Below are positions 1 to 13,289 of a stretch of 13,289 bases of DNA, in pieces. Both the position numbers and the translations under genes were made by a program. The DNA comes from Fonticula alba ATCC 38817 (taxonomy: Eukaryota > Protista > Nucleariida). The stretch lies in NCBI GenBank assembly GCA_000388065.2, contig KB932304.1. One strand, written 5' to 3'. The notes below the pieces were generated by a model. The model searched no databases and was not told the DNA's origin. It saw only the letters and a list, made by a program, of their open reading frames with translations. Numbering within the stretch: position 1 is the first letter of the stretch; each line of letters opens with the position of its first letter.

Positions 1-424
1 AAACTCTAAGTCTAGTACTATTATCCAACAAAACTATCAACCTATCATAAACCCCTCTCATTTTTGGGAACACATAAGCAATATGAGCTAGACCCACCTC
101 TGAACGAGGAAGCTTTATACTTAATAACCTATCAAATAAGTCTACATCCAACTTCCTAACCATAAAATAAGCAATAAACCCTCCTACAAAAAAAAAGAGT
201 AATAATATCTGCCTAAGAGCCAAAGACTGGTAGTCAAATCCCCTAAACCCATCCATAACAAATGAAATAGCTACTATGGAGAACACAAACAGAATAAACT
301 GCAATAATAAATATAACACACTAAACAAAATCTCAAAATAATTCAAATGAGACAAGCCACTCAATCTTTTATGGATATCCTTATGATTTGTAGAGAACAA
401 CCATTTAGAAACAAATTGATTCAT
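1..424 (-). CDS. Chimeric membrane-protein ORF, 3'-truncated by the window edge (>=141 aa): cox1-like first 17 codons fused to an orf282-family body
   Basis: Manual translation: ATG at 424-422 preceded by an in-frame TAA, no stop down to base 2. MNQFVSKWLFSTNHKDI-HKRLSGLSHLNYFEILFSVLYLLLQFILFVFSIVAISF...GFIAYFMVRKLDVDLFDRLLSIKLPRSEVGL... Absent from the ORF track, probably because no stop falls in the window. Confidence 0.8.
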   Translation of the reverse strand, partial: MNQFVSKWLFSTNHKDIHKRLSGLSHLNYFEILFSVLYLLLQFILFVFSIVAISFVMDGFRGFDYQSLALRQILLLFFFVGGFIAYFMVRKLDVDLFDRLLSIKLPRSEVGLAHIAYVFPKMRGVYDRLIVLLDNSTRLRV

Positions 425-457
425 TTATGATTTGTTTATAGTATATTGGTTGTTTAT

Positions 458-530
458 GGCGGACTATAGGATTCGAACCCATGACCAACAGAATCACAAT
501 CTGGTGCTCTACCAACTGAGCTAAGCCCGC
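458..530 (-). tRNA. trnH: tRNA-His(GTG)
   Basis: GCGGGCT/AGTCCGC acceptor, D arm GCTC-AGTTGGTA-GAGC, loop TT-GTG-AT, T loop TTCGAAT, discriminator C. Confidence 0.95.
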
Positions 531-541
531 ATAATTTTAGT

Positions 542-613
542 TTGAGAAAATGGGATTCGAACCCATGCGTCATGAAATCAAAATCCATTGCCTTACCACT
601 TGGCTATTCCTCA
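542..613 (-). tRNA. trnQ: tRNA-Gln(TTG)
   Basis: TGAGGAA/TTTCTCA acceptor, ATGGA-TT-TTG-AT-TTCAT anticodon arm, ATGGG-TTCGAAT-CCCAT T arm. Confidence 0.95.
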
Positions 614-869
614 ATGGAGTTTCCTCCTTATATTTTGTTAATATTAGTTCTTAAATTTAGTTAATTTTTATTAGAATTAGATAAAACTTCTCTAACTAAT
701 GATACTTTTTCCATATTAACACAATATGAATATATCATGTTATAACTAATTGTAAAAAATACACAAAACATAAAAGAAAGATTAAAAAAAGTTAATAAAT
801 CTACTTGTGGCATAAAATATAATATATAATGGCTATATTATCTGGAAGATTATTAATATATTATCTATT

Positions 870-952
870 TGAGGGCGATGGGATTCGAACCCATGCTCAC
901 ATTCGTGGATAGATTTACAGTCTATTGCTTTAAACCGCTCAGCCACACCCTC
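870..952 (-). tRNA. trnY: tRNA-Tyr(GTA), long variable arm (bacterial type)
   Basis: GAGGGTG/CGCCCTC acceptor, ATAGA-CT-GTA-AA-TCTAT, variable region CCACGAATGTGAGC. Confidence 0.95.
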
Positions 953-954
953 AA

Positions 955-1026
955 TGAGTTTAACAGGACTCGAACCTGCGACCAACGGATTAAAAGTCCG
1001 CTGCTCTACCACTGAGCTATAAACTC
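955..1026 (-). tRNA. trnK: tRNA-Lys(TTT)
   Basis: GAGTTTA/TAAACTC acceptor, GCGGA-CT-TTT-AA-TCCGT, GCAGG-TTCGAGT-CCTGT, discriminator A. Confidence 0.95.
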
Positions 1027-1146
1027 TTATTTATAAAGTTAAATAACCCCCATTCAGTCTAATTTATTTTACTATTCCTTTACGATCTAGTGTCGAACAG
1101 ATTTAAGCTTCTAATATAATAGCATTTATTTAGGCTATAACGTAGG

Positions 1147-1195
1147 AATTTCCTAATCCTGAAGAGATTGTCGTATCTTGCCCTGTTAGGAAATT
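1147..1195. repeat. 10-bp perfect inverted repeat in the spacer between divergent tRNA clusters
   Basis: AATTTCCTAA (1147-1156) / TTAGGAAATT (1186-1195). Confidence 0.7.
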
Positions 1196-1222
1196 ATTAG
1201 TTATGTTGTTATTCAAAAAATA

Positions 1223-1307
1223 GCCCGCTTGGTGGAACTGGCAGACACGACAGACTTAAAATCTGTTTTCAGTTTATGAAGTATTGGTTCGAGTCCAATA
1301 GTGGGTA
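1223..1307 (+). tRNA. trnL: tRNA-Leu(TAA), long variable arm
   Basis: GCCCGCT/AGTGGGT acceptor, ACAGA-CT-TAA-AA-TCTGT, ATTGG-TTCGAGT-CCAAT. Confidence 0.95.
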
Positions 1308-1309
1308 TT

Positions 1310-1381
1310 GGGCTTATAGTTTAGTGGTAAAACGTTCCACTCATGATGGATACTACGTGGGTTCGATTCCTACTAAGCCCA
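1310..1381 (+). tRNA. trnI: tRNA with CAT anticodon, probably lysidine-type tRNA-Ile(CAT) rather than Met
   Basis: GGGCTTA/TAAGCCC acceptor, GTTT/AAAC D stem, loop CT-CAT-GA. The GGGCTTATAGTTTA...CCTACTAAGCC frame resembles mitochondrial trnI(CAU) genes as I recall them. tRNA call is firm; Ile versus Met is inferred. Confidence 0.8.
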
Positions 1382-1408
1382 ATGCTCCCGATCTTTTGAT
1401 CGTAGCAT
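1382..1408 (+). other. Stem-loop immediately 3' of the Leu-Ile tRNA pair
   Basis: ATGCT-CC-CGATC-TTTT-GATCG-T-AGCAT. Confidence 0.6.
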
Positions 1409-1564
1409 ACCACTATGATAGTTTATGGATGTATCTTTCGCACACACACATGCTCAGATATTACCTATCTCTTAATATTGCTTTTAGGCCACACAATATA
1501 ATTTATATTTCATTTTTTTAAATGAGATTTGTTTTTTAAGTATTTATATTATAGTTTGTTTTAA

Positions 1565-1602
1565 TTATAAAATTTTTTTTTATGAAAAATATTTTATTTG
1601 TG
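1565..1602 (+). repeat. 38-bp perfect copy of the leader and first 7 codons of orf731 (inverted relative to 13252-13289)
   Basis: TTATAAAATTTTTTTTTATGAAAAATATTTTATTTGTG is identical to the reverse complement of 13252-13289. Confidence 0.95.
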
Positions 1603-1647
1603 TATGTTCCAGCTAGTGAGACACTAGTGTGGGTTGTTAGTGATTAA
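1582..1647 (+). CDS. 21-aa upstream ORF (MKNILFVYVPASETLVWVVSD), in frame with orf282 and separated from it by one TAA
   Basis: ATG at 1582, TAA at 1645-1647, then open FSCGSKFRFSYFTIRFIF to the ATG at 1702 (120-nt offset). Confidence 0.45.
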   Translation: MKNILFVYVPASETLVWVVSD

Positions 1648-1701
1648 TTCAGTTGTGGATCAAAATTTAGATTTAGTTATTTTACTATTAGATTTATATT
1701 T

Positions 1702-2550
1702 ATGTATAATAGGTTAGATTTAATGGAGTTAAAAGCCTTATATGAAAACATGATAGCCCCGATTTTATCTATTATTTTATTTATAGTTAAATTTTTGATG
1801 TATATAATTGGAATAATTTATATATCTAAAATACAACCAGTTTATATATCTGAAGCTTCTACTGATTATTTTTTGAAGTATTATTATTATGTTATTATTG
1901 TTATTTTTATTGGATTAGGGTATCTAGTTAGTAAGTACTTCTTTAATGATTTGTATAGTAATTTGTCTTTGCCTTCGGCTAGTAAAGGATTTTATTATTT
2001 ATTGGGTCTGTTTTTGGAAGAGTATTTATTGGATAAGTGTTCTTTGTTGCTAGCTTATATTGGTCCTGCTCGAAGTAAATTGTTGGTTTTTAATTTTGTG
2101 AAATTTTTAGTTAAAGTATTGTTTCCTTTGTTTCAAGTAGGTTGTTTTGTTTTATTTCTGGTTGGGGTTATTTCCTCTTGGTATTTAATTGTGTTTGTAG
2201 CAGCTGCCCTGGTTAATTGGCTGTTTTGTTTAGTTATTTTTTCTTATGAAAAGACTTGTACAGTGGCTTTTGAGTATTTAAAAACATTGATTGATGTGGA
2301 GGTTATAGACTCTGTCCCTTTGTTTGATAGTAGGTTTTTAGCTGTTGTAGCTATCACTGTAAAGATCTCTGAAGAGGGTAAAAACGAAGGGTTTGAAGCA
2401 GCTGATGGTGGAAACTTAGGCCAGCGCTGGCTTTTCTATGCTTATTTTTCTGCTTATAAGGGAATGTATGATGCTTATTTAGGTTATACAACGAAAGCTA
2501 TGGCTGTGCTCAGAGTGTCTGTTTGGTTTTTTATAGTGATGGTAATATAA
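1702..2550 (+). CDS. orf282, multi-pass membrane protein of unknown function; intact member of a local paralog family
   Basis: Long ORF with several hydrophobic segments; by eye, no tatC, ccmC or respiratory-chain motifs. Confidence 0.75.
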   Translation: MYNRLDLMELKALYENMIAPILSIILFIVKFLMYIIGIIYISKIQPVYISEASTDYFLKYYYYVIIVIFIGLGYLVSKYFFNDLYSNLSLPSASKGFYYLLGLFLEEYLLDKCSLLLAYIGPARSKLLVFNFVKFLVKVLFPLFQVGCFVLFLVGVISSWYLIVFVAAALVNWLFCLVIFSYEKTCTVAFEYLKTLIDVEVIDSVPLFDSRFLAVVAITVKISEEGKNEGFEAADGGNLGQRWLFYAYFSAYKGMYDAYLGYTTKAMAVLRVSVWFFIVMVI

Positions 2551-2987
2551 TGTTTAGTTTTGTTAAAAATATTAGATTTTATTCTACTATAGCTAGTGGG
2601 AAATTAAGATTAGGGTTTGTCAATGACGCTAGTAAGGCTAGCTTACGTGGTAACTTTAGAAAAGGAGGACTGGACATTTTGCACCCAGTACTTACAAAGT
2701 TTGATGAAGAGGTTGAGACTCATTGTGTTCTATTACAAGGAACTAGTGTAAGTACACCCACAAATCCAGCAGAGTTGATAGATAACGATTTAAATATGGT
2801 TGGTGAGAATAAAGCACAATATGGGGTTGTACCTCATCAAAAGGTCTGTTTTAATAATAACCAGTTTAGTCCTATTAAAGGCTCTGAAAAATTTATTGAA
2901 CAAAATGGGGATAGGGTAATCGATATTGTTAAAAGTAAAAACCCGGGTTTATTGAATGAAAATGATACTGATAGTGATGTAGATTAG
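2550..2987 (+). CDS. orf145, soluble hypothetical protein, probably translationally coupled to orf282
   Basis: TAATG stop/start overlap at 2548-2552 favours the ATG at 2550 over the TTG at 2523. Confidence 0.65.
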   Translation: MFSFVKNIRFYSTIASGKLRLGFVNDASKASLRGNFRKGGLDILHPVLTKFDEEVETHCVLLQGTSVSTPTNPAELIDNDLNMVGENKAQYGVVPHQKVCFNNNQFSPIKGSEKFIEQNGDRVIDIVKSKNPGLLNENDTDSDVD

Positions 2988-3220
2988 TAAAAGGATAAAT
3001 TACATATATAATAATAGTTAAATTATATATTGTATTATAATCTAAATTAATTTAACTGCTATGATTTCACGATGTAGAATTTATTAGTATAAGTTTAAAT
3101 AAAAAATAAAAGAATAATTACACTATATAATATTGATCTAAACTGTAATATGTTCATGATAATAAACATTAATAATTACTGATTCACATACAAAATTAAA
3201 AACAACATAAAATAATATAA

Positions 3221-3635
3221 AGAGTTTATAGCTCAGTTGGTAGAGCAATTGCTTTGCAAGCAATAGGTCATGGGTTCGAGTCCTGTTAAACTCCATAAGA
3301 ATTAAGTATTCTATAGTATAGTTTATAGCTCAGGTGTTTCTAGGGTGTTGAGCTATTTATATGTTTTTTATATAAGAATGTTGTGTATTTTCTGCCTGTA
3401 GTTTATGGTTTTATCCTTGTTGTATAAAAAATATGGTTTATGTAAAATAACCTATTATTTAGGTTATTTGATACTGTACAGAGCACTTCTGTATGTTAAG
3501 CTCTTTAAACTATTAACTATTGGTGTTATAATAGTTTTATATAGCCCCTATTTAATATTCAAGTAGGGGCTTATTCAAAGTATAGTAAAATAAAGAGATT
3601 ATTTTACTAGAATATATCTATATGTTTAATATTAT
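3221..3635 (+). repeat. Diverged duplicated module, copy 1 (copy 2 at 6731-7130)
   Basis: Collinear blocks: tRNA(-like) gene plus CATAAGAA; 3392-3425 vs 6888-6921 (28/34 identical); AGCCC(C)TA hairpins; 3607-3635 vs 7102-7130 (24/29 identical). Confidence 0.8.
3222..3294 (+). tRNA. trnA: tRNA-Ala(TGC) by anticodon, with an atypical Lys-identical acceptor stem
   Basis: GAGTTTA/TAAACTC acceptor, GCTC-AGTTGGTA-GAGC, ATTGC-TT-TGC-AA-GCAAT, ATGGG-TTCGAGT-CCTGT, discriminator C. Confidence 0.8.
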
Positions 3636-4915: not shown

Positions 4916-6289
4916 ATGTTAATTGACTGTACTTACTCAGGTGAATTAATAGAAACTAAGGATAAAGTTCTATCTGGTCTGAATAAAGATAATAAAAGAA
5001 CAGAACAAACAGTATTATATGAATCTCATAATAAAGATTCTGCTTATAAAGTAATAACTTCTAATAACATCACTTTCATTATGAAAGAATTAAAGTATTT
5101 TAATAGTATTAATACTATTAAATATAGTTTTAATGAGTCAATTTATTTTAATTTATATCATAAATTAAAATTTATTAAAATTCCTAATAAATTTTATTTA
5201 AAACAATGGTTTCACATAATGAAGCTAAATCATGTAAATTTAAAATATTTTAAATTAAGAAATTTAATTGAGTCTAAGTATACTAAATTAAAGTCTATTA
5301 ATGGTACAATTCCTGAAATTGATATAAAAATGTTAAATACTAATTATATTGAAAGAATATCAGAAAGATACTTTAATAAACTAGATATTTTTTCTAAAAA
5401 TTTTATAAGTGAGTTGTATCCTTTATTTAATTCATTTAGATTAAATGAATTTAAAATAATAAATAAGCCAGATGGACTTTATAGAAAACACAATGAGTTT
5501 AAACCACTAGACCATGGTGTTTTAAGAACAGTTATGTTAGGATTTAACTTCCTAAGTGATAAAAAGATAGAATTAAGATCTAACTCAGATTTATTATTGA
5601 GTGATGCAAGGTCTATAGAACCAAAATTTTTAAATTTCAAGCAAAAATATTTTTCTGAAAGCAGTGATCATTCAATATATAATTCTAATGCCACTGCAAA
5701 TATAAATAATATATCAGTATTTAAAAATACTGATAAAATAAATAATATATTTAATAGTATATCCTTATATAAATTTATAGATATTCAAATGAAATTAAAA
5801 TTAGTAGCTAACAATAATTTAAATAAATTAATAAAAACAAATACAAAAACAAAAAAACAAAAATATAATAAATGGAACAACAAAAGCTACTTAAAAGTAA
5901 TATCATCATACTCTAACATAGAGCATGACACAGGATTTATTACAAGAATATACTCACAATTTACTAATTATTCATTACCATATTGGAATGCACACATCTT
6001 TATACAGATGCTAAGACTAATATTCATGTCAAACAGATTCCTACTATTAAAATTATTATCAAGAGCACTATTCACATTCAGATTCCACCCAAATAAAAGC
6101 AAAGATGCACCAAAAGCTTTAAAAATAGAAGCCTCTGGATTAATAAAAAAATTAGGAAGATCAAACAAAATACAATACAAACTAAAAGACACAAACAAAA
6201 ACAACATCAAATACGCCGTAGATTACGAAAACCTAACTGCATTAAGCAGATACGGAATCACAAACATAAAAGTAAGCCTAGAAAACTAA
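4916..6289 (+). CDS. rps3: Ribosomal protein S3, C-terminal part with a long low-complexity N-terminal region (rps3_b)
   Basis: C-terminal KALKIEASGLIKKLGRS...VDYENLTALSRYGITNIKVSL fits the uS3 C-domain (KGIKI.CSGRL...R...IDY....A.T.YG..GIKVW); ATG 1 nt after the rps3_a stop. Confidence 0.8.
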   Translation: MLIDCTYSGELIETKDKVLSGLNKDNKRTEQTVLYESHNKDSAYKVITSNNITFIMKELKYFNSINTIKYSFNESIYFNLYHKLKFIKIPNKFYLKQWFHIMKLNHVNLKYFKLRNLIESKYTKLKSINGTIPEIDIKMLNTNYIERISERYFNKLDIFSKNFISELYPLFNSFRLNEFKIINKPDGLYRKHNEFKPLDHGVLRTVMLGFNFLSDKKIELRSNSDLLLSDARSIEPKFLNFKQKYFSESSDHSIYNSNATANINNISVFKNTDKINNIFNSISLYKFIDIQMKLKLVANNNLNKLIKTNTKTKKQKYNKWNNKSYLKVISSYSNIEHDTGFITRIYSQFTNYSLPYWNAHIFIQMLRLIFMSNRFLLLKLLSRALFTFRFHPNKSKDAPKALKIEASGLIKKLGRSNKIQYKLKDTNKNNIKYAVDYENLTALSRYGITNIKVSLEN

Positions 6290-6298
6290 AAAAAAAAA

Positions 6299-6730
6299 AT
6301 GATAGTATCAAGACTAAACTATACTTCTTTTTCTTTAGTTAATACACCTAGCATAGAACACAGTGTATTCTTATACTCTGCTATTCTAGCTATGACTCTT
6401 TCTCTAGTAATATATACTGCTGGATACTGTGTAACAAATAACCACAGAACAGACCTAAACAAAATAAGTGCTTATGAGTGTGGATACAGTCCAAACTCTC
6501 ACGAATCAAACCAATACAATGCAAACTTCATAATAATATGTCTATTATTCCTACTAATAGACCTAGAAATACTATTCCTAGTACCATTCCTATACACTGT
6601 TGACTCCATAGACACTACCACATGGAATATCTTCATATACTGTATGTGCACTATCATAGGAGGAATAATATTCGAACTACTAACAAGCTCGTTCGGAAAA
6701 CTAGGTAAAATCATCAAACAAAACAAATAA
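6299..6730 (+). CDS. nad3: NADH dehydrogenase subunit 3
   Basis: KISAYECGY and FLLIDLEILFLVP motifs. Confidence 0.93.
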   Translation: MIVSRLNYTSFSLVNTPSIEHSVFLYSAILAMTLSLVIYTAGYCVTNNHRTDLNKISAYECGYSPNSHESNQYNANFIIICLLFLLIDLEILFLVPFLYTVDSIDTTTWNIFIYCMCTIIGGIIFELLTSSFGKLGKIIKQNK

Positions 6731-7130
6731 AGAGTTTATAGCTCAACGGCTAGAGCAAGTATATACACCTGATATGGGTTCGAATCCCATTAAACTCCAT
6801 AAGAAATAAATATTATAAACACATTGGGGATTTACAGTATGTAAAGTAATTTATCTGTACTATTTATATAACAAGATAGTACATACTCTACCTGAATTTT
6901 ATGGCTAAATCCTTGTTGTATTTTAAATTTAGTTTTTGTGATAAAAACATAAATTAATTTAATTATATAGTAGACACAACAGTCGTGTATATTATGGGAT
7001 TTTTAATATAAACTATTAAAATACCCATAGATCTATATAGCCCTATACAACAATATTATATAGGGCTAACTCTAACAATACATAAATAATGTAGTGTTTA
7101 TCTAGAATATATTCATGTGTTAAATCTTAT
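6731..7130 (+). repeat. Diverged duplicated module, copy 2, with three hairpins
   Basis: Blocks shared with copy 1; stems TGTACTAT/ATAGTACA (6856-6883), TATGGG..TTTTAATA/TATTAAAA..CCCATA (6993-7029), TAGCCCTATA/TATAGGGCTA (7038-7068). Confidence 0.8.
6732..6798 (+). ncRNA. tRNA-like element lacking a proper anticodon arm (pseudo-tRNA or t-element)
   Basis: Perfect acceptor GAGTTTA/TAAACTC, D stem GCTC/GAGC and T arm ATGGG-TTCGAAT-CCCAT, but only 17 nt between D and T arms (22-23 expected); starts 1 nt after the nad3 stop. Confidence 0.75.
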
Positions 7131-7806
7131 ATAAATATATAATAAATATATTATACCTAATCTAACCTGAAGAGGAATAAATAATATTATAAAATAAAAT
7201 AAAAATAATTTTTATTTTATAAATGTGTATTTTATAATACTAATACATTAATAAAACAATATAGAACCAGACATGTAAGTGTCAACCCCATATAATAAAA
7301 ATAATAAGTTCTTAGGTTAGATTTAGTATGCTATAGACTAACTATCAAAACTACATAAATATTTATATTCATTAGGTAGATAAAAAACTTATTGATCTAG
7401 TACATAATACTTATACTAAATATAAATATAATATTATATTTATATTTAAATACACTTATTCAGGGTACATCCTAACTATGATTAGATAAGGTATAAGTTT
7501 CTAAACGATGGTCTGTCAGTACCTTCCCTTTATTAAATTCTAAATAAAATAGATATAACTAAAAAAAGTATATAATATACAATACATTATAAATAATTCT
7601 ATTAAATTAATAAATGTATTGGGGACTGCTAAATAACCCAAATTATTAAAACATATAATATCTAACTCTAAAATATAAAGCCTTAAAATATGAATAAGCA
7701 CCCCAATACATCCTATAGCTAAAATATTATACTATAATATTAATAGCATATATTCTAAGTCTTATTTTGCGGGATAATTAATAAACAGAAATTATTTTGG
7801 ACTGAA

Positions 7807-7832
7807 AAAAAAACTAGGGGCCTAGTTTTTTT
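7807..7832. terminator. Symmetric hairpin with A/T tails, terminator- or processing-like
   Basis: AAAAAAACTAG-GGGC-CTAGTTTTTTT, 11-bp perfect stem, 50 nt past the stop of the 7882-8064 ORF; function inferred. Confidence 0.5.
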
Positions 7833-7881
7833 AATATAAACTAATTTTAAACAGGTTCCTATTAAAACATATTGGTAATAA

Positions 7882-8064
7882 CTAATAATAGGTGCTGGTT
7901 CTAATATGTTTTAATAATTTTAGGTTTATTAAATAAAAACAATATTGTTTAAATATTGTTTGTACCTTATATTTTAAAGATATATATATTATACCAATAA
8001 TGTAGGCTGAATTAGCATATTTAAATAGAATTATAAACCCCCTACTTTTAAAATGTCCTATCAA
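7882..8064 (-). CDS. 60-aa ORF, truncated paralog of the orf282 N-terminus (mini-gene or pseudogene)
   Basis: IILF-x6-YIIGIIYIS matches orf282 in residues and spacing; TTG start. Confidence 0.55.
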   Translation of the reverse strand: MIGHFKSRGFIILFKYANSAYIIGIIYISLKYKVQTIFKQYCFYLINLKLLKHIRTSTYY

Positions 8065-8163
8065 GCTTCTCTAAATACACAGCTATTATTTCTATCTAGA
8101 GAGTTATATTCTAGATTATAACCCACTAGTTTTAGCCAGTACAGCCTTGGACAAATACATCAA

Positions 8164-8520
8164 CCCTTCTTCACTATAAGCCTATACTATAGGAGCATTG
8201 TGTTAGAGGAAATACACTTAATAAATTGAGTTCACTAACATATTGGTGACTGCAAGCCATGATTTTATATAAGAAAGTCTTCACATATAATTCATTCATA
8301 AGTAAAGAGCTCTAACTCTAGTAGGTTCTAACTATTAGATAGTAAGAACTAACACAGTTAGCCTCACACCTACTACCAAACACTATTTTGATTAAGAACT
8401 TAATCACTAATTTAAAATTAACATTAGAATTACATAATAAACCTAAAGACATTATAATACAGATAAATTAATCAAAATTACAATAATATAAACTAGTCTA
8501 AACCTACGCACTAAAAATAA
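8164..8520 (-). pseudogene. Decayed orf282-family copy B
   Basis: One frame with multiple stops gives LFLVRRFRLVYIIVILINLS, VYYVILMLIL, IKSWLAVTNMLVN and SEEG, collinear with orf282 LFIVKFLMYIIGIIYIS, YYYVIIVIFI, ISSW..LVN and SEEG. Confidence 0.45.
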
Positions 8521-8599
8521 AATTATAAATGTTTTTATATTAATAGTGTAAAACTAAGATTATACCCATTAGCTATTGTAATGCTATATCTTCCTAGTA

Positions 8600-9105
8600 G
8601 ACCTGTGCTATATCTAAAACAATATAAATATAACCCAAACAATATCTACTAGGAAAATACTACTATATAAATAACTGCAAGTAGTGTATACACACCTATC
8701 AACTCAATTATAATTTAGCCAGAGTCTTAACAGAGCTTAGTTCACGATTATTTCCTAAAATAATATCCAATAAATACATTTTCTAAGAAATAGCTTAACT
8801 AAAATAAAACAATGATACAGAGCTAGAATTAACCCTTGTAATTCATAAGTCTATAACCATAGATTTATGAATCTAACGAGATACACACTGGAAAATCATA
8901 AGGGTATTATGACTCATATAATATTAGCACTAAAAATGATATAAATACTACAAAAACTATAGCTCTCAACCCCACCCATAACACCATTACTTTAACAAGA
9001 AAAATAAACTGCTATAAAATTAAGACAGAACAAAATACTGTATATAGCCACATATAGATGTCCTGTACTATTCAATTCGTATAATATCTTTTTAATTAAA
9101 ACCAT
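8600..9105 (-). pseudogene. Decayed orf282-family copy A
   Basis: ATG at 9105 gives MVLIKKILYE...SILFCLNFIAVY, with TAA after 37 codons. The 14-mer GTATTTATTGGATA (8764-8777) is identical to orf282 2022-2035. LF-LE-YLLD is recoverable with two 1-nt indels, followed by LGNNR..VKTLAKL vs IGPAR..VKFLVKV. Confidence 0.6.
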
Positions 9106-9143
9106 AATACTAACTAAAGTAACTACACAACAAAGAATTAGTT

Positions 9144-9200
9144 TACAGGCAAGGGGATTCGAACCCATTCACAGGTAAACCTGCTCTTTCCTAGACCTGA
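9144..9200 (-). ncRNA. Minimal tRNA-like element (T arm plus partial acceptor, no anticodon loop)
   Basis: TCAGGTC...GAGCAGG-TTTA-CCTG-TGA-ATGGG-TTCGAAT-CCCCT-TGCCTGT-A; acceptor pairs at 5 of 7 positions, D arm reduced. Confidence 0.6.
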
Positions 9201-9285
9201 AAAAAAAAAAATTATTAAATGTTTTTTATTTAATAAATAAAAAATCTATCAGGGATTTTTTTTATGGTATCGTCTTTGTTTATAT

Positions 9286-10236
9286 TTAATATTTGTTATT
9301 GTTTTGGTTGATAATGTTGTTTGTCCATGTAGTGTAGTTGTATTGGTGTGTTGTTTTGTTTGTTATGTTGTGTTGTAGTATGCTTCCTATTGTTGGGTTT
9401 GTTTGCCTGTTGTGGTTGTTAATGTTTGGGTTTGTTGTGTGGTTTGCTTGTAATGGAGTTAATGTTTCTCTGAGTTCATTTGGTGTGTTGTTTTGTGTTG
9501 TTTCTTGAGTGATTCCTATAGTTTTTAAATAGCTTATCCAATTTTGGTGGATGTTGTTTTGTGTTGCTTCTATTGCTAATTTTGTTAGTTCTTTGTTTGG
9601 AGTTTTTGGGTGGGCTTTTGCGTAGTTTTCTTTAACTGTTTTTGCAAATTCTTTATATTCACTCTCTGACATTAAGTTTAATGCTCGGGCAGTGCTGTTG
9701 TAGAATTGAGTGTAAGAGTGGGAGTTTGATAGGGCTGTGCAATGTAATGATTGTGAGTTGTGAAAGAATTCTACTGCTTTGTCTTCTGAATAAGTTTCGG
9801 CGTATTCTTTGAATTCTTCAGAATAAGTTGTGTCTAGTTTATTGTCTAATTTATCTAGCCATTCTATAATTTCACTGGCTTTTAATAGTCCTGCTGTTTT
9901 ATATGAATTCATATGAGAGTTCATATAAATATAGTGTATTCCTTTATAAGTATCGAATCTAGTAGGAGATCCCTCAGATACTAATGTTTTATTTAAGATA
10001 TAGGCTTTTTTTAAGTCTTCTGCTTGAGAGTTAAATAATAGTTGGAATAAAGATCCTTTACTCATTATGAATGAGTCGATTAATGGTCTTATTAAATAAG
10101 GCTTAGAAATCTTTGTAGGGATTGTTTCAGGGAGTTTTTCTGTGATTATTACACTTGATATTTCACCCCAGTATCCCATATCAAAAAGGATTAGGTTAAC
10201 AGTAGAAAGAAGCATATTATACAAATTAGATAGCAT
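9286..10236 (-). CDS. orf316, hypothetical soluble protein with an HMG-box-like segment and an N/T/Q-rich tail
   Basis: Long ORF overlapping the rps7 end by 11 nt; motif at aa 194-233. Confidence 0.7.
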   Translation of the reverse strand: MLSNLYNMLLSTVNLILFDMGYWGEISSVIITEKLPETIPTKISKPYLIRPLIDSFIMSKGSLFQLLFNSQAEDLKKAYILNKTLVSEGSPTRFDTYKGIHYIYMNSHMNSYKTAGLLKASEIIEWLDKLDNKLDTTYSEEFKEYAETYSEDKAVEFFHNSQSLHCTALSNSHSYTQFYNSTARALNLMSESEYKEFAKTVKENYAKAHPKTPNKELTKLAIEATQNNIHQNWISYLKTIGITQETTQNNTPNELRETLTPLQANHTTNPNINNHNRQTNPTIGSILQHNITNKTTHQYNYTTWTNNIINQNNNKY

Positions 10237-11026
10237 TTTTTTTTTTTTTCACGTCATCATTTTTTGTAAAGCATTTTTTAGTGTTAGTTGCTTTTTCTAA
10301 CATTTTAGTAGGGTGTATTCCTTCTGGTATAATTTTAACCTTAATGTTTTTTTTGATGTTGGCAATTCTATTTAATTTTTTTATGTTTAATTCTTTTGTG
10401 TTTGGTGTAGTTTTAGCTAGTTTAGGGCTTATGTTCTCTTCTTTATGGTTTTTGATAAAGAAGTTTACTAGTCTTACTCTTAGTCTTTTCATTTGTAATA
10501 TTCTATTTTTTAGAGCTACTGTTCTTTTTCTAGATTTTGTAGTATAGAATTCCATGCGATTTTTTCTAGAATATATTGTTAAATGTTTAGTTTGTACATT
10601 CCTAAAATGATTTAATGATACAAGTAGTTTTTTAGGGAGTCCATCTACTCCGTTTAAGTTTTTAATGTGTTGTAATATTAAGTTTTTATAGACTGAAAGT
10701 TTTCTTGAGCCCAACATTAAAAAATGTTTTTTAGATTGTCTTCCCATTCTAATGTTTATGTATTTACTTATTGGTAATGATTCAGATGTTAGGTACATAT
10801 AGTATTCATATGGGCTAACACCATCATTCTCTCTTGATAATATATATACTTGATTTAAAGCATTATGCATTTTTTGACTTTTACCATTTTTTATAAAACC
10901 TTTTCTTATTTTTTCTGTTACAAAATTATCTTGGTAATCTAAGTGTTTATAACCTGCTCCTAAGTTTATTTTTTTAGGGGAGTGACTATAAGATTTATGA
11001 TTATAATTATATATTATATTATTCAT
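10226..11026 (-). CDS. rps7: Ribosomal protein S7, divergent, with a basic C-terminal extension
   Basis: GFIKNGKSQKMHNALNQVY and SPYEYYMYLTSESLPISKYINIRMGR align with uS7 (MK.GKK..A..I...AF; P......AI.N..P..EV...R.GG). Confidence 0.7.
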   Translation of the reverse strand: MNNIIYNYNHKSYSHSPKKINLGAGYKHLDYQDNFVTEKIRKGFIKNGKSQKMHNALNQVYILSRENDGVSPYEYYMYLTSESLPISKYINIRMGRQSKKHFLMLGSRKLSVYKNLILQHIKNLNGVDGLPKKLLVSLNHFRNVQTKHLTIYSRKNRMEFYTTKSRKRTVALKNRILQMKRLRVRLVNFFIKNHKEENISPKLAKTTPNTKELNIKKLNRIANIKKNIKVKIIPEGIHPTKMLEKATNTKKCFTKNDDVKKKKNAI

Positions 11027-11076
11027 ATAATATGAAATATAATTAATTTACAAACTATATCTGGGTACTTAATAAA

Positions 11077-13272
11077 TCAATATTTAAAACATGTTGAGAC
11101 TATTTCCTCATCTATTTCTTTAAGAAGTAGACAGAGCTTATATATCTCAATGGCTTTTTTTATCTCTACTATACTGGGAGTATAGTCCATTAACACCTGC
11201 CTAGTTTTTAAACATTTTTTTAAATAATCTATTAATAAAATAATATTTTCATTCTCTATCTCTTGATAAATATTATTAAATAGCATAATGTTTAACTTTC
11301 CTTCAGCTAATAACTTAATTAATTCTGACGTAAAACAACTATCAGGCTTTGTTAATTTAAACCATCTTAAATGTTCTAATGATTTGTTGTGTGTTTTATA
11401 TTTAATTCTATGTATCTTTTTTTCTAGATTAGATGAATCTAAGTTACTATTTACTAAAAAAGTCCTTAACTCATCTTTAGTAAAGTCTAATTCAGGAAAT
11501 AACAAGTTTAAAGTGTCTTTAATAAATTCTGTATTATTATACTTATATAATTCTGTTTTTACTCTCCTTGTATAAAGAGAGTTTAAGTCTTTAGATAAAA
11601 CTACATTATTATATGTATTACAATTAATATAATTTTTCATTATATTAAATAAGAAATCCCTTCCTCTAAAAGAACCCTGCTCATAAAAAGGCTCCCCCCT
11701 TTTAGATAAAGGTTTTATCGCCCCCTTTTTAAAAAAGAATTTTGTCCTATTAGTATATTTTGTTAATCCTATTCTTTTGTTTTGTCTCAATATTCTTTTC
11801 TTTACTCTATGGGCTATAACCCTTTTATAATGATAAGTAAATAAACAATTGGCATATTTATGGACCATTCCAAAGATAGATTTTCTTAACCTAGGTTTAT
11901 TTTTAGTTAAGAAAAATTTATTACATCTTTTTCTAAGCCTCAATAGACGATATGGTTTATATCTTAATATCCTAACGTTTTTAATCTTTAATTTAATTCT
12001 TCTTTCTATTTTTAAGTTAGCTAAATCTTGTTTATCTTGGATCTTTTGTCTAGCTGCATACTTAAAAGAAAATTTCCTTTCAACTTTTTGAAATAAAAAT
12101 CCTCTAAAATGGCCTATCCTAGCCATAGTTGAAAATGTGTTAGGATCCATTATATTAAAAGTATTAAAAAACCTGGATGTTAATCTAACATCCACTGCAT
12201 TTCTTGCTAGACTATAAATAAGGCGCTTGTCCTCTAAAAAATATGGCCATTTAATATTTTTATTATTAATTTTATTATAATCTTTTAACTCTGAGAAAGA
12301 GTTAAAATAATATAATTTAGATTTACCCTCTTTTTTAATATATATAGGATCAGGAAAAATATCTGGGTTATTTAATAAAAAATTATTAAATGATTTAGAA
12401 CTTTTAGTTTTTAAATTATACTTATAACGACCTACAACATATTTAAATATAGCTAATCGTGACCTCCTCCACTTAAATTTATACTTAGATCTAATAGTTA
12501 ACTTATCTTGTTTATACTTTAAAATATAAAAAGTGTTAAAAGAGCCATGAATTAAACGCTCTAATCTATAAAATAAAACTTTATCTTTTAAATTAGCCCT
12601 ATTACTAATAATTTTAAAATATTTATTAATAGCCAACCTTATAAAATGAAATAAGCCCCTATTCAACTCAGTAAACGTATTCAACCCACCAAATTTATAA
12701 TTCTTTGAATACACTTCACTAAACTCAGATTTCTTATAAGAATTATACCCAGAAATCTTTAAAAATAACTCCCTCTCATACCTCTTATACTTAATAAAAG
12801 CATGAGAAGAACCCTTACGCTCATAAAAATACCTATAATTATAAAAAAAAAAAGGATCTCTAACACCAACATACTTCAACCTCCCATATTTTTTTAAATC
12901 ATATAACATCAAAAACCTCCTCTTATTAAAAAAATTACGCCTCCTTAAAAAAAAAGGAAGCCTCCTAAATTGACCCAAAACATCTTTAGATTCACACTTC
13001 AAATTCACCAACCTACCCCTCTTATTAAAAACCCTATAAAACTTAATAGAATTAGGCAAAGAAACATGAACCCTCCTAAACTCCAACTGAGACAAATCAT
13101 CAATAACACCAGAAACCGATAAAACCGGCAAACCAACCCCACCAGCTGCCAACAAATCCAATACAGCCCCCTTCAAAAACAACAACTCCAAATCATTAAA
13201 ATCCAACAAATAAACAGACCTAATACCGTCCAAATTCAAATACTCTCCTCTCACAAATAAAATATTTTTCAT
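11077..13272 (-). CDS. orf731, very Lys/Arg/Phe-rich protein, possibly a highly diverged or fused ribosomal protein
   Basis: 731 open codons in AT-rich DNA, same strand as and directly upstream of rps7; no unambiguous family motif. Confidence 0.75.
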   Translation of the reverse strand: MKNILFVRGEYLNLDGIRSVYLLDFNDLELLFLKGAVLDLLAAGGVGLPVLSVSGVIDDLSQLEFRRVHVSLPNSIKFYRVFNKRGRLVNLKCESKDVLGQFRRLPFFLRRRNFFNKRRFLMLYDLKKYGRLKYVGVRDPFFFYNYRYFYERKGSSHAFIKYKRYERELFLKISGYNSYKKSEFSEVYSKNYKFGGLNTFTELNRGLFHFIRLAINKYFKIISNRANLKDKVLFYRLERLIHGSFNTFYILKYKQDKLTIRSKYKFKWRRSRLAIFKYVVGRYKYNLKTKSSKSFNNFLLNNPDIFPDPIYIKKEGKSKLYYFNSFSELKDYNKINNKNIKWPYFLEDKRLIYSLARNAVDVRLTSRFFNTFNIMDPNTFSTMARIGHFRGFLFQKVERKFSFKYAARQKIQDKQDLANLKIERRIKLKIKNVRILRYKPYRLLRLRKRCNKFFLTKNKPRLRKSIFGMVHKYANCLFTYHYKRVIAHRVKKRILRQNKRIGLTKYTNRTKFFFKKGAIKPLSKRGEPFYEQGSFRGRDFLFNIMKNYINCNTYNNVVLSKDLNSLYTRRVKTELYKYNNTEFIKDTLNLLFPELDFTKDELRTFLVNSNLDSSNLEKKIHRIKYKTHNKSLEHLRWFKLTKPDSCFTSELIKLLAEGKLNIMLFNNIYQEIENENIILLIDYLKKCLKTRQVLMDYTPSIVEIKKAIEIYKLCLLLKEIDEEIVSTCFKY

Positions 13273-13289
13273 AAAAAAAAATTTTATAA
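13252..13289 (-). repeat. Source copy of the 38-bp leader/start repeat; runs to the window edge and may be longer
   Basis: Reverse complement is identical to 1565-1602. Confidence 0.95.

Follow-up and report, generated by a model that had tools for sequence, protein, structure and literature searches.

The start shared by orf731 and the orf282 leader probably marks one end of a 1,127-bp mitochondrial repeat in Fonticula alba

The window analysed here, the whole stretch of 13,289 nt, has the hallmarks of mitochondrial sequence (a high AT content, with the standard genetic code), and its DNA is mitochondrial DNA of Fonticula alba. At the left end of the window lies a cox1-headed ORF, then a group of tRNA genes, then orf282 and a 154-aa ORF; orf731 occupies the right end and reads leftward (Table 1). 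Besides these genes, the window contains tRNA-Ala, nad3 and several orphan ORFs. A Pfam search with E-values up to 10 returned nothing credible for orf731, orf266, orf316, orf282 and the 154-aa ORF. No homologues of orf282 in other sequences were found by database search, in a collection where orf282 itself was not called. In the literature we found no paper describing the structure of the F. alba mitochondrial genome.

The window was compared with two kinds of public data. The scaffold KK198105.1 (17,980 bp, assembly GCA_000388065.2) carries the exact orf731 protein; its coordinates are given below with the prefix L002. Logan contigs, built with k=31, end at the start of a repeat and reach 30 nt into it. 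Contigs of four public runs (X4, X9, X12 and the RNA run X19) were compared with positions 1-3300 of the window. The X4 run (DNA of the source organism, 2012) has single-copy contigs at a depth of 320-405; the RNA runs X19 and X25 are tiny, 11-12 million letters. RNA-seq runs from 2026 listed under the label 'organism B' were set aside, since this label covers numerous unconnected studies and probably stands for a host or a co-cultured organism.

Table 1. Features of the window and X4 contigs that cover its left part
Feature	Position	Strand	Basis or remark
cox1-headed ORF, first 141 codons	2-424	-	ORF list
Leftward repeat extension, about three copies	375..475	-	first 50 nt of cox1 (424-375), spacer, 3′ part of tRNA-His
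tRNA-His, straddles left edge of R	458-530	-	ARAGORN + Rfam
Repeat R, 1,127 bp, perfect, about four copies in mitochondrial DNA	476..1602	.	X4 contig record 10
tRNA-Gln, tRNA-Tyr, tRNA-Lys, within R	540..1026	-	ARAGORN + Rfam
tRNA-Leu(UAA) and tRNA-Met, within R	1223..1382	+	ARAGORN + Rfam
38-mer, last 38 nt of R	1565..1602	+	sequence comparison, motif search
21-codon ORF (MKNILFVYVPASETLVWVVSD), ends at TAA; first seven codons are the orf731 start	1582..1647	+	translation
Leader and first eight codons of orf282 family, about three copies	1603..1726	+	X4 contig 1573-1726
orf282, orphan predicted multi-pass membrane protein	1702..2550	+	ORF list, hydropathy
154-aa ORF, overlaps orf282, second gene of cassette	2523..2987	+	35% identical to ORF after orf289, E 4e-24
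orf731, very basic orphan ORF; ATG and first seven codons inside repeat	11077..13272	-	ORF list
Inverted orf731-side copy of R, first 38 nt, cut by sequence end	13252..13289	-	KK198105.1 ends at identical base
X4 contig with orf731, 4,009 nt	touches only 1573-1602		depth 394.2, about one copy (record 12)
X4 contig	1573-1726		depth 1030.6, about three copies; single contig in X9 too
X4 contig	1697-1855		depth 673.6, about two copies
X4 contig	1826-3255		depth 319.5, one copy

We saw that 13252-13289, read on the opposite strand, matches the segment 1565-1602 (TTATAAAATTTTTTTTTATGAAAAATATTTTATTTGTG) at every base, exactly as an earlier note on this DNA had reported. The 38-mer is made up of 17 nt, the ATG at 1582 and six more codons (MKNILFV in all). 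Its 29-nt core, with up to three mismatches allowed, is found at only two sites in the window (none expected in 200 shuffles) and, in KK198105.1, only at the two corresponding sites. The match is not due to chance. A leader motif serving as a common signal in front of genes was considered as well and rejected, the motif being present only at ends of R in the window and KK198105.1.

The figure of 38 is a lower bound, with identity reaching the last base of the window (13289). KK198105.1 is 100% identical to window 6284-13289 and stops at the same terminal base, with just 17 nt upstream of the orf731 ATG. An extension past 13289, which the earlier note had called for, was thus not to be had from either scaffold; the k=31 contigs, on the other hand, indicated a repeat of 1,127 bp, designated R in Table 1. 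Only 38 nt looked common because the assembly halts 38 nt into the orf731-side copy of R.

In X4 the repeat is seen as one unbranched contig of 1,127 nt (record 10) that corresponds exactly to 476-1602 and has a depth of 1279.5, versus 320-405 for single-copy contigs. It holds a leftward row of tRNA genes (Lys, Tyr, Gln and part of His) that faces cox1 or its chimeras, the rightward tRNA-Leu and tRNA-Met genes, an 81-aa ORF and, at its right end, a 199-nt AT-rich spacer after tRNA-Met followed by the ATG and six codons. Folding of 1383-1720 was unremarkable (z = -1.3), and we propose no structured RNA element in the leader. KK198105.1 carries a copy of window 476-1911 in inverted orientation, ahead of orf289, a paralogue of orf282; positions 476-1602 correspond to L002 6823-5697. 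This copy shows its first mismatch to the window only at 1856; the ATG, the leader and the TAA are identical.

The contig of R forks at 1602: in X4 about one copy leads into orf731 and about three copies lead into an orf282-type leader. The loose end past 1602 in X4 reads AGAGGAGAGTATTTG... (AGAGGAGAGTATTTGAATTTGG), which is orf731 from codon 8 onward. Flank depths in X4 sum to 1228 on the left (897.5 + 330.8) and 1425 on the right (1031 + 394), in agreement with the 1280 of R. The k=31 contigs give R four right flanks and at least three left ones, with pairings of left and right flanks taken from the two scaffolds only. In X9, record 19 ends at 1602; in X12, record 4 spans 982-1911. The depth ratio between R and the family-side contig 1573-1726 is ∼3.2:1 in X9 (105 vs 32) and 1.24:1 in X4, a hint that the proportions of the flanks of R differ between samples.

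Past 1602 the orf731 context and the leader context were compared in register, with 56 identities in 200 positions versus 61 expected; their local alignment score fell below the shuffled mean. Position 1602 is a sharp recombination edge, not a place where homology has decayed.

The edge on the orf731 side was reproduced in other data. The predicted 734-aa product of this edge (FFF followed by orf731) was found on eight Logan contigs from several runs, all starting at 13281; this position is exactly 30 nt into the repeat, as predicted for a break at k=31. Because all eight contigs begin at 13281, the fork at 13251/13252 is real and reproducible. No fork at 1564/1565 was present among the loose ends listed for X4, X9 and X12; together with the depth of R, this indicates that sequence entering R from orf731 continues through R. 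The k=31 contigs do not span R (1,127 bp, far longer than 31) from orf731 to any left flank; that the orf731-side copy is full length we infer from the absent fork and from a depth of 3.3-4.0 copies, not a clean four.

Segment 1565-1602 is, then, probably where R ends on the right. R measures 1,127 bp and is present in about four copies, one of which is adjoined by orf731 and three by members of the orf282 family.

To the left, the repeat extends into the X4 contig 375-505 (depth 897.5), which ends 50 nt into cox1 and has two continuations before 375. A contig of the RNA run X19 (2,395 nt, depth 69) with intact cox1 overlaps 375-435 and then goes on as normal cox1; its end, at 435, lies next to tRNA-His on the downstream side of that gene, with 11 nt between it and the cox1 ATG. 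An RNA contig end at this position is what one would expect for the 5′-end of a tRNA-punctuated mRNA. The copy in KK198105.1 is without window 399-475, the cox1 ATG and part of tRNA-His being missing; what it retains of the cox1 head has diverged (..FSTNHEDI.., L002 6824-6880).

In the window, the block 375-1602 is contiguous, with the cox1 head (375-424) at one end and the orf731 head (1582-1602) at the other. The two 'captures' of start sites are two ends of one duplicated block, not independent cases. The earlier note had put the orf731 leader beside the cox1-headed paralogue as signs of a recurring mechanism; with both heads at the ends of one contiguous block, the recurrence is lost. What stands of its proposal is an origin by DNA duplication or recombination, through which an upstream region came to be shared along with an ATG and the first seven codons; what falls is the independent second case.

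The ATG at 1582 is 120 nt (40 codons) before the ATG at 1702 and hence in frame with orf282; the in-frame TAG at 1552 makes it the first start in its frame. Translation of 1582-2547 (322 codons) bore out the observation that there is one stop in this whole frame, the TAA at 1645-1647, located 54 nt before the ATG of the orf282 family. Chance alone would account for the in-frame arrangement: there is one stop in 40 codons in the frame of orf282 vs two in 39 codons in the +1 frame, and the chance of being in frame is one in three.

The TAA is invariant in all copies seen (X4, X9, X12 and KK198105.1); the polymorphism at 1645-1647 that the earlier note had thought worth looking for did not appear in any of them. 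TAA is also the commonest stop codon, ending six of the nine ORFs checked, and ARAGORN and Rfam found no suppressor tRNA reading TAA in the window. Neither a functional fusion nor read-through of this codon, one of the fates suggested for it, has support here, with a TAA that is fixed in all copies and is the usual stop, and no suppressor tRNA in the window; nor is there a sign of reassignment, TAA being used as a terminator. A chimeric ORF of the type known from cytoplasmic male sterility (CMS) would be continuous; the frame headed by orf731 codons ends after 21 codons in every copy and every run. The 21-codon ORF is most likely a dead end and a by-product, with orf282 translated from its own ATG at 1702.

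Downstream of the leader, the copies diverge one after another. The genes orf282 and orf289 are identical up to 1855, and their products are 49% identical over 270 aa (E 1e-62); the orf289 copy is then followed by a relative of the 154-aa ORF of the window. A third paralogue of the orf282 family shares the leader and the first eight codons (MYNRLDLM) and diverges after 1726 (CTTTGTCTTTTCTTTTTTCTAAGAATGATT).

The other neighbour of R, orf731, encodes a very basic product (pI 10.2, 21% Lys+Arg). Its database search gave a sole match, orf731 itself, and JGI metagenome contigs contained neither a relative of orf731 nor an exact match to its start junction. An Atlas feature match to ribosomal protein S7 (Ribosomal_S7, score 0.78) was below the meaningful level and had no support from Pfam; this identity was rejected. 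The ATG in R is the only start available to orf731, all codons upstream of codon 8 being supplied by R. To call orf731 a 'resident gene' is an assumption.

Any explanation has to start from the established extent and approximate copy number of R, the fork and sharp breakpoint at 1602 and the invariant TAA. The earlier note had in mind a repeat of ∼38 bp, captured independently, and a fusion headed by orf731 codons that is regulated by the TAA or read through it; the in-frame arrangement with a single stop speaks for such a fusion. However, the 38 bp are really the edge of a 1,127-bp repeat in about four copies, as judged from k=31 contigs, with the contig unbroken over 476-1602 at about four-copy depth; the frame statistics are unremarkable, TAA ends six of nine ORFs checked, no suppressor tRNA was found, and the codon is the same in X4, X9, X12 and KK198105.1. 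A short independent capture is therefore very unlikely. Still harder to believe is a chimeric join made by the assembler, be it in the 38 nt at the scaffold end or at the 1602/1603 junction. The identity does sit at the very end of two scaffolds sharing 7 kb, and the mitochondrial assembly is clearly fragmented at repeats; but the orf731 junction is present in eight contigs from several runs, the junction of R to the leader is present in X4, X9, X12 and KK198105.1, and X12 record 4 crosses it, reaching >600 nt into R and ∼300 nt beyond. The assembly chimera that the earlier note had feared is thus countered by both junctions being present in contigs of independent runs. One could also suppose that 13289 is the true end of a linear mitochondrial DNA whose last 38 nt match an internal site by happenstance; two scaffolds stop at this one base, and a DNA end would produce no fork in the k-mer graph. 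Against this, the depths of R and its left flanks (1280 and 1228) are about one copy higher than the three-copy value (1031), the edge of a repeat is a usual place for an assembler to stop, and no telomere-like feature was seen, all of which makes a true end very improbable.

Transfer in the reverse direction deserves more attention, although we rate it as rather unlikely. R, the ATG and the 21-codon ORF would then be native to the cassette of the orf282 family (or to cox1 plus a family gene), and orf731 would be the chimera: it would have lost its own 5′-end and then gained R by recombination. Family genes make up three of the four right flanks of R; orf731 has no relatives to vouch for its N-terminus, and its every codon before codon 8 comes from R. 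An orphan itself, orf731 may be the recipient of R rather than its donor. On the other hand, the other edge of the block clearly comes from a resident gene, cox1, which places R once beside an intact cox1; the simplest source would be a copy with a genuine gene start at either end, and the 21-codon ORF resembles a truncated remnant rather than a gene.

To return to the reading in which R ends in the true start of orf731, we propose that a divergent cox1/tRNA/orf731 intergenic region was the source of the block 375-1602, which a single copying event would have placed between two genes of the orf282 family. Such an event would account for both heads, the 50 nt of cox1 and the 21 nt of orf731 at opposite edges of the block; it predicts one copy of R that joins intact cox1 to orf731. 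The block may then have spread by further duplication and gene conversion. The nested limits of identity at 1602, 1726 and 1855 would follow from later duplication or gene conversion going outward from R.

The role of R in expression may be read, with caution, from strand composition. The sense-strand GC skew just outside the 1602 end is +0.41 for orf282, +0.49 for orf289 and +0.62 for orf731, and it decays downstream in each case (window 1603-2400, L002 4800-5690 and window 12400-13251, respectively). This pattern suggests that R could be a divergent transcription-start and tRNA module with starts reading outward and driving each neighbour; the skew could equally mark replication starts or reflect the amino-acid composition of the proteins. 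Of the two tiny RNA runs, X19 yielded no contig over 476-3300 but contained roughly a third of the words of the 5′ kilobase of orf731; X25 contained 0.14 of the words of 1400-3000.

Start codons in the window are found in dissimilar surroundings. The ATGs of nad3 and orf316 come directly after runs of 11-13 A (6288-6298 and 10237-10249), and the ATG common to orf731 and the 21-codon ORF comes directly after nine T (1573-1581); the A-run and the T-run may be different start contexts.

One could speculate further that R is a portable two-way expression cassette, with its promoter or promoters and tRNA genes, that gene conversion pastes in front of orphan genes. We hold this to be possible but doubtful. 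If it were true, each pasting would give the neighbours transcription and sometimes a start codon, and an opisthokont mitochondrion would be generating and trying out chimeric genes in the manner of plants.

Identical as they are and placed in both orientations, the copies of R should cause inversions and rearrangements of the genome. A second repeat is seen from 6284 on, with nad3 and a tRNA-like element (6284-6922 in the window, L002 10975-11613, and 2188-2825 in the Logan contig L003). On the left it is joined to a 465-aa orphan ORF in the window and to nad5 in KK198105.1; Logan contigs with left partners of both kinds stop 30 nt past the boundary at 6284, and L003 departs from the window sequence after ∼6917-6922. 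At least one of the NCBI scaffolds may show just one of several isomers.

The mitochondrial genome of F. alba is probably rich in repeats and present as multiple isomers, with chimeric gene starts. The reading of this locus is corrected in that two apparent start-site captures collapse into the edges of one repeat. The main value of R lies in understanding and finishing this unusual genome; long reads are needed for finishing and annotation, because the scaffolds break at repeat copies or choose arbitrarily among them.

Several features of R have parallels in known systems. In plant mitochondrial genomes, large and intermediate repeats recombine and give rise to isomers and subgenomic molecules. 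The F. alba copies are like such repeats in being identical, ∼1.1-1.4 kb long and present in both orientations; 476-1602 is the same, base for base, in the window and in KK198105.1. The likeness extends to several alternative flanks on each side of R, to assembly breaks at its edges and to ratios of flank depth that vary between samples. In contrast to the plant repeats, the host is an opisthokont amoeba, R consists of a tRNA cluster with two gene starts, and the isomers are putative here.

The likeness to tRNA-punctuated mitochondrial transcription is partial: tRNA-Leu and tRNA-Met are located just before the leader, and the cox1 RNA contig ends after tRNA-His; however, a spacer of 199 nt separates tRNA-Met from the ATG in R.

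The ORFs associated with CMS are ORFs of unidentified function whose 5′ flank and initial codons stem from a resident mitochondrial gene, and they are transcribed, usually along with neighbouring genes. At least one account links chimeric ORFs to CMS in plants (PMC3152571). What we see in F. alba is similar in that the edge of R falls a few codons into a gene, from which the gene of an orphan membrane protein inherits an upstream region and an ATG; the cox1-headed neighbour in the window is a true in-frame example. Unlike CMS ORFs, the orf282 fusion is broken by a TAA after 21 codons, so that orf282 does not qualify as a chimeric ORF; the donor, orf731, is an orphan too, and the locus is known from sequence alone, with no phenotype known. 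Plants are well known for repeats with chimeric starts in this style, of which there are few descriptions from the relatives of fungi and animals; R is a fresh instance of a recognised phenomenon, recombining mitochondrial repeats that create chimeric gene starts.
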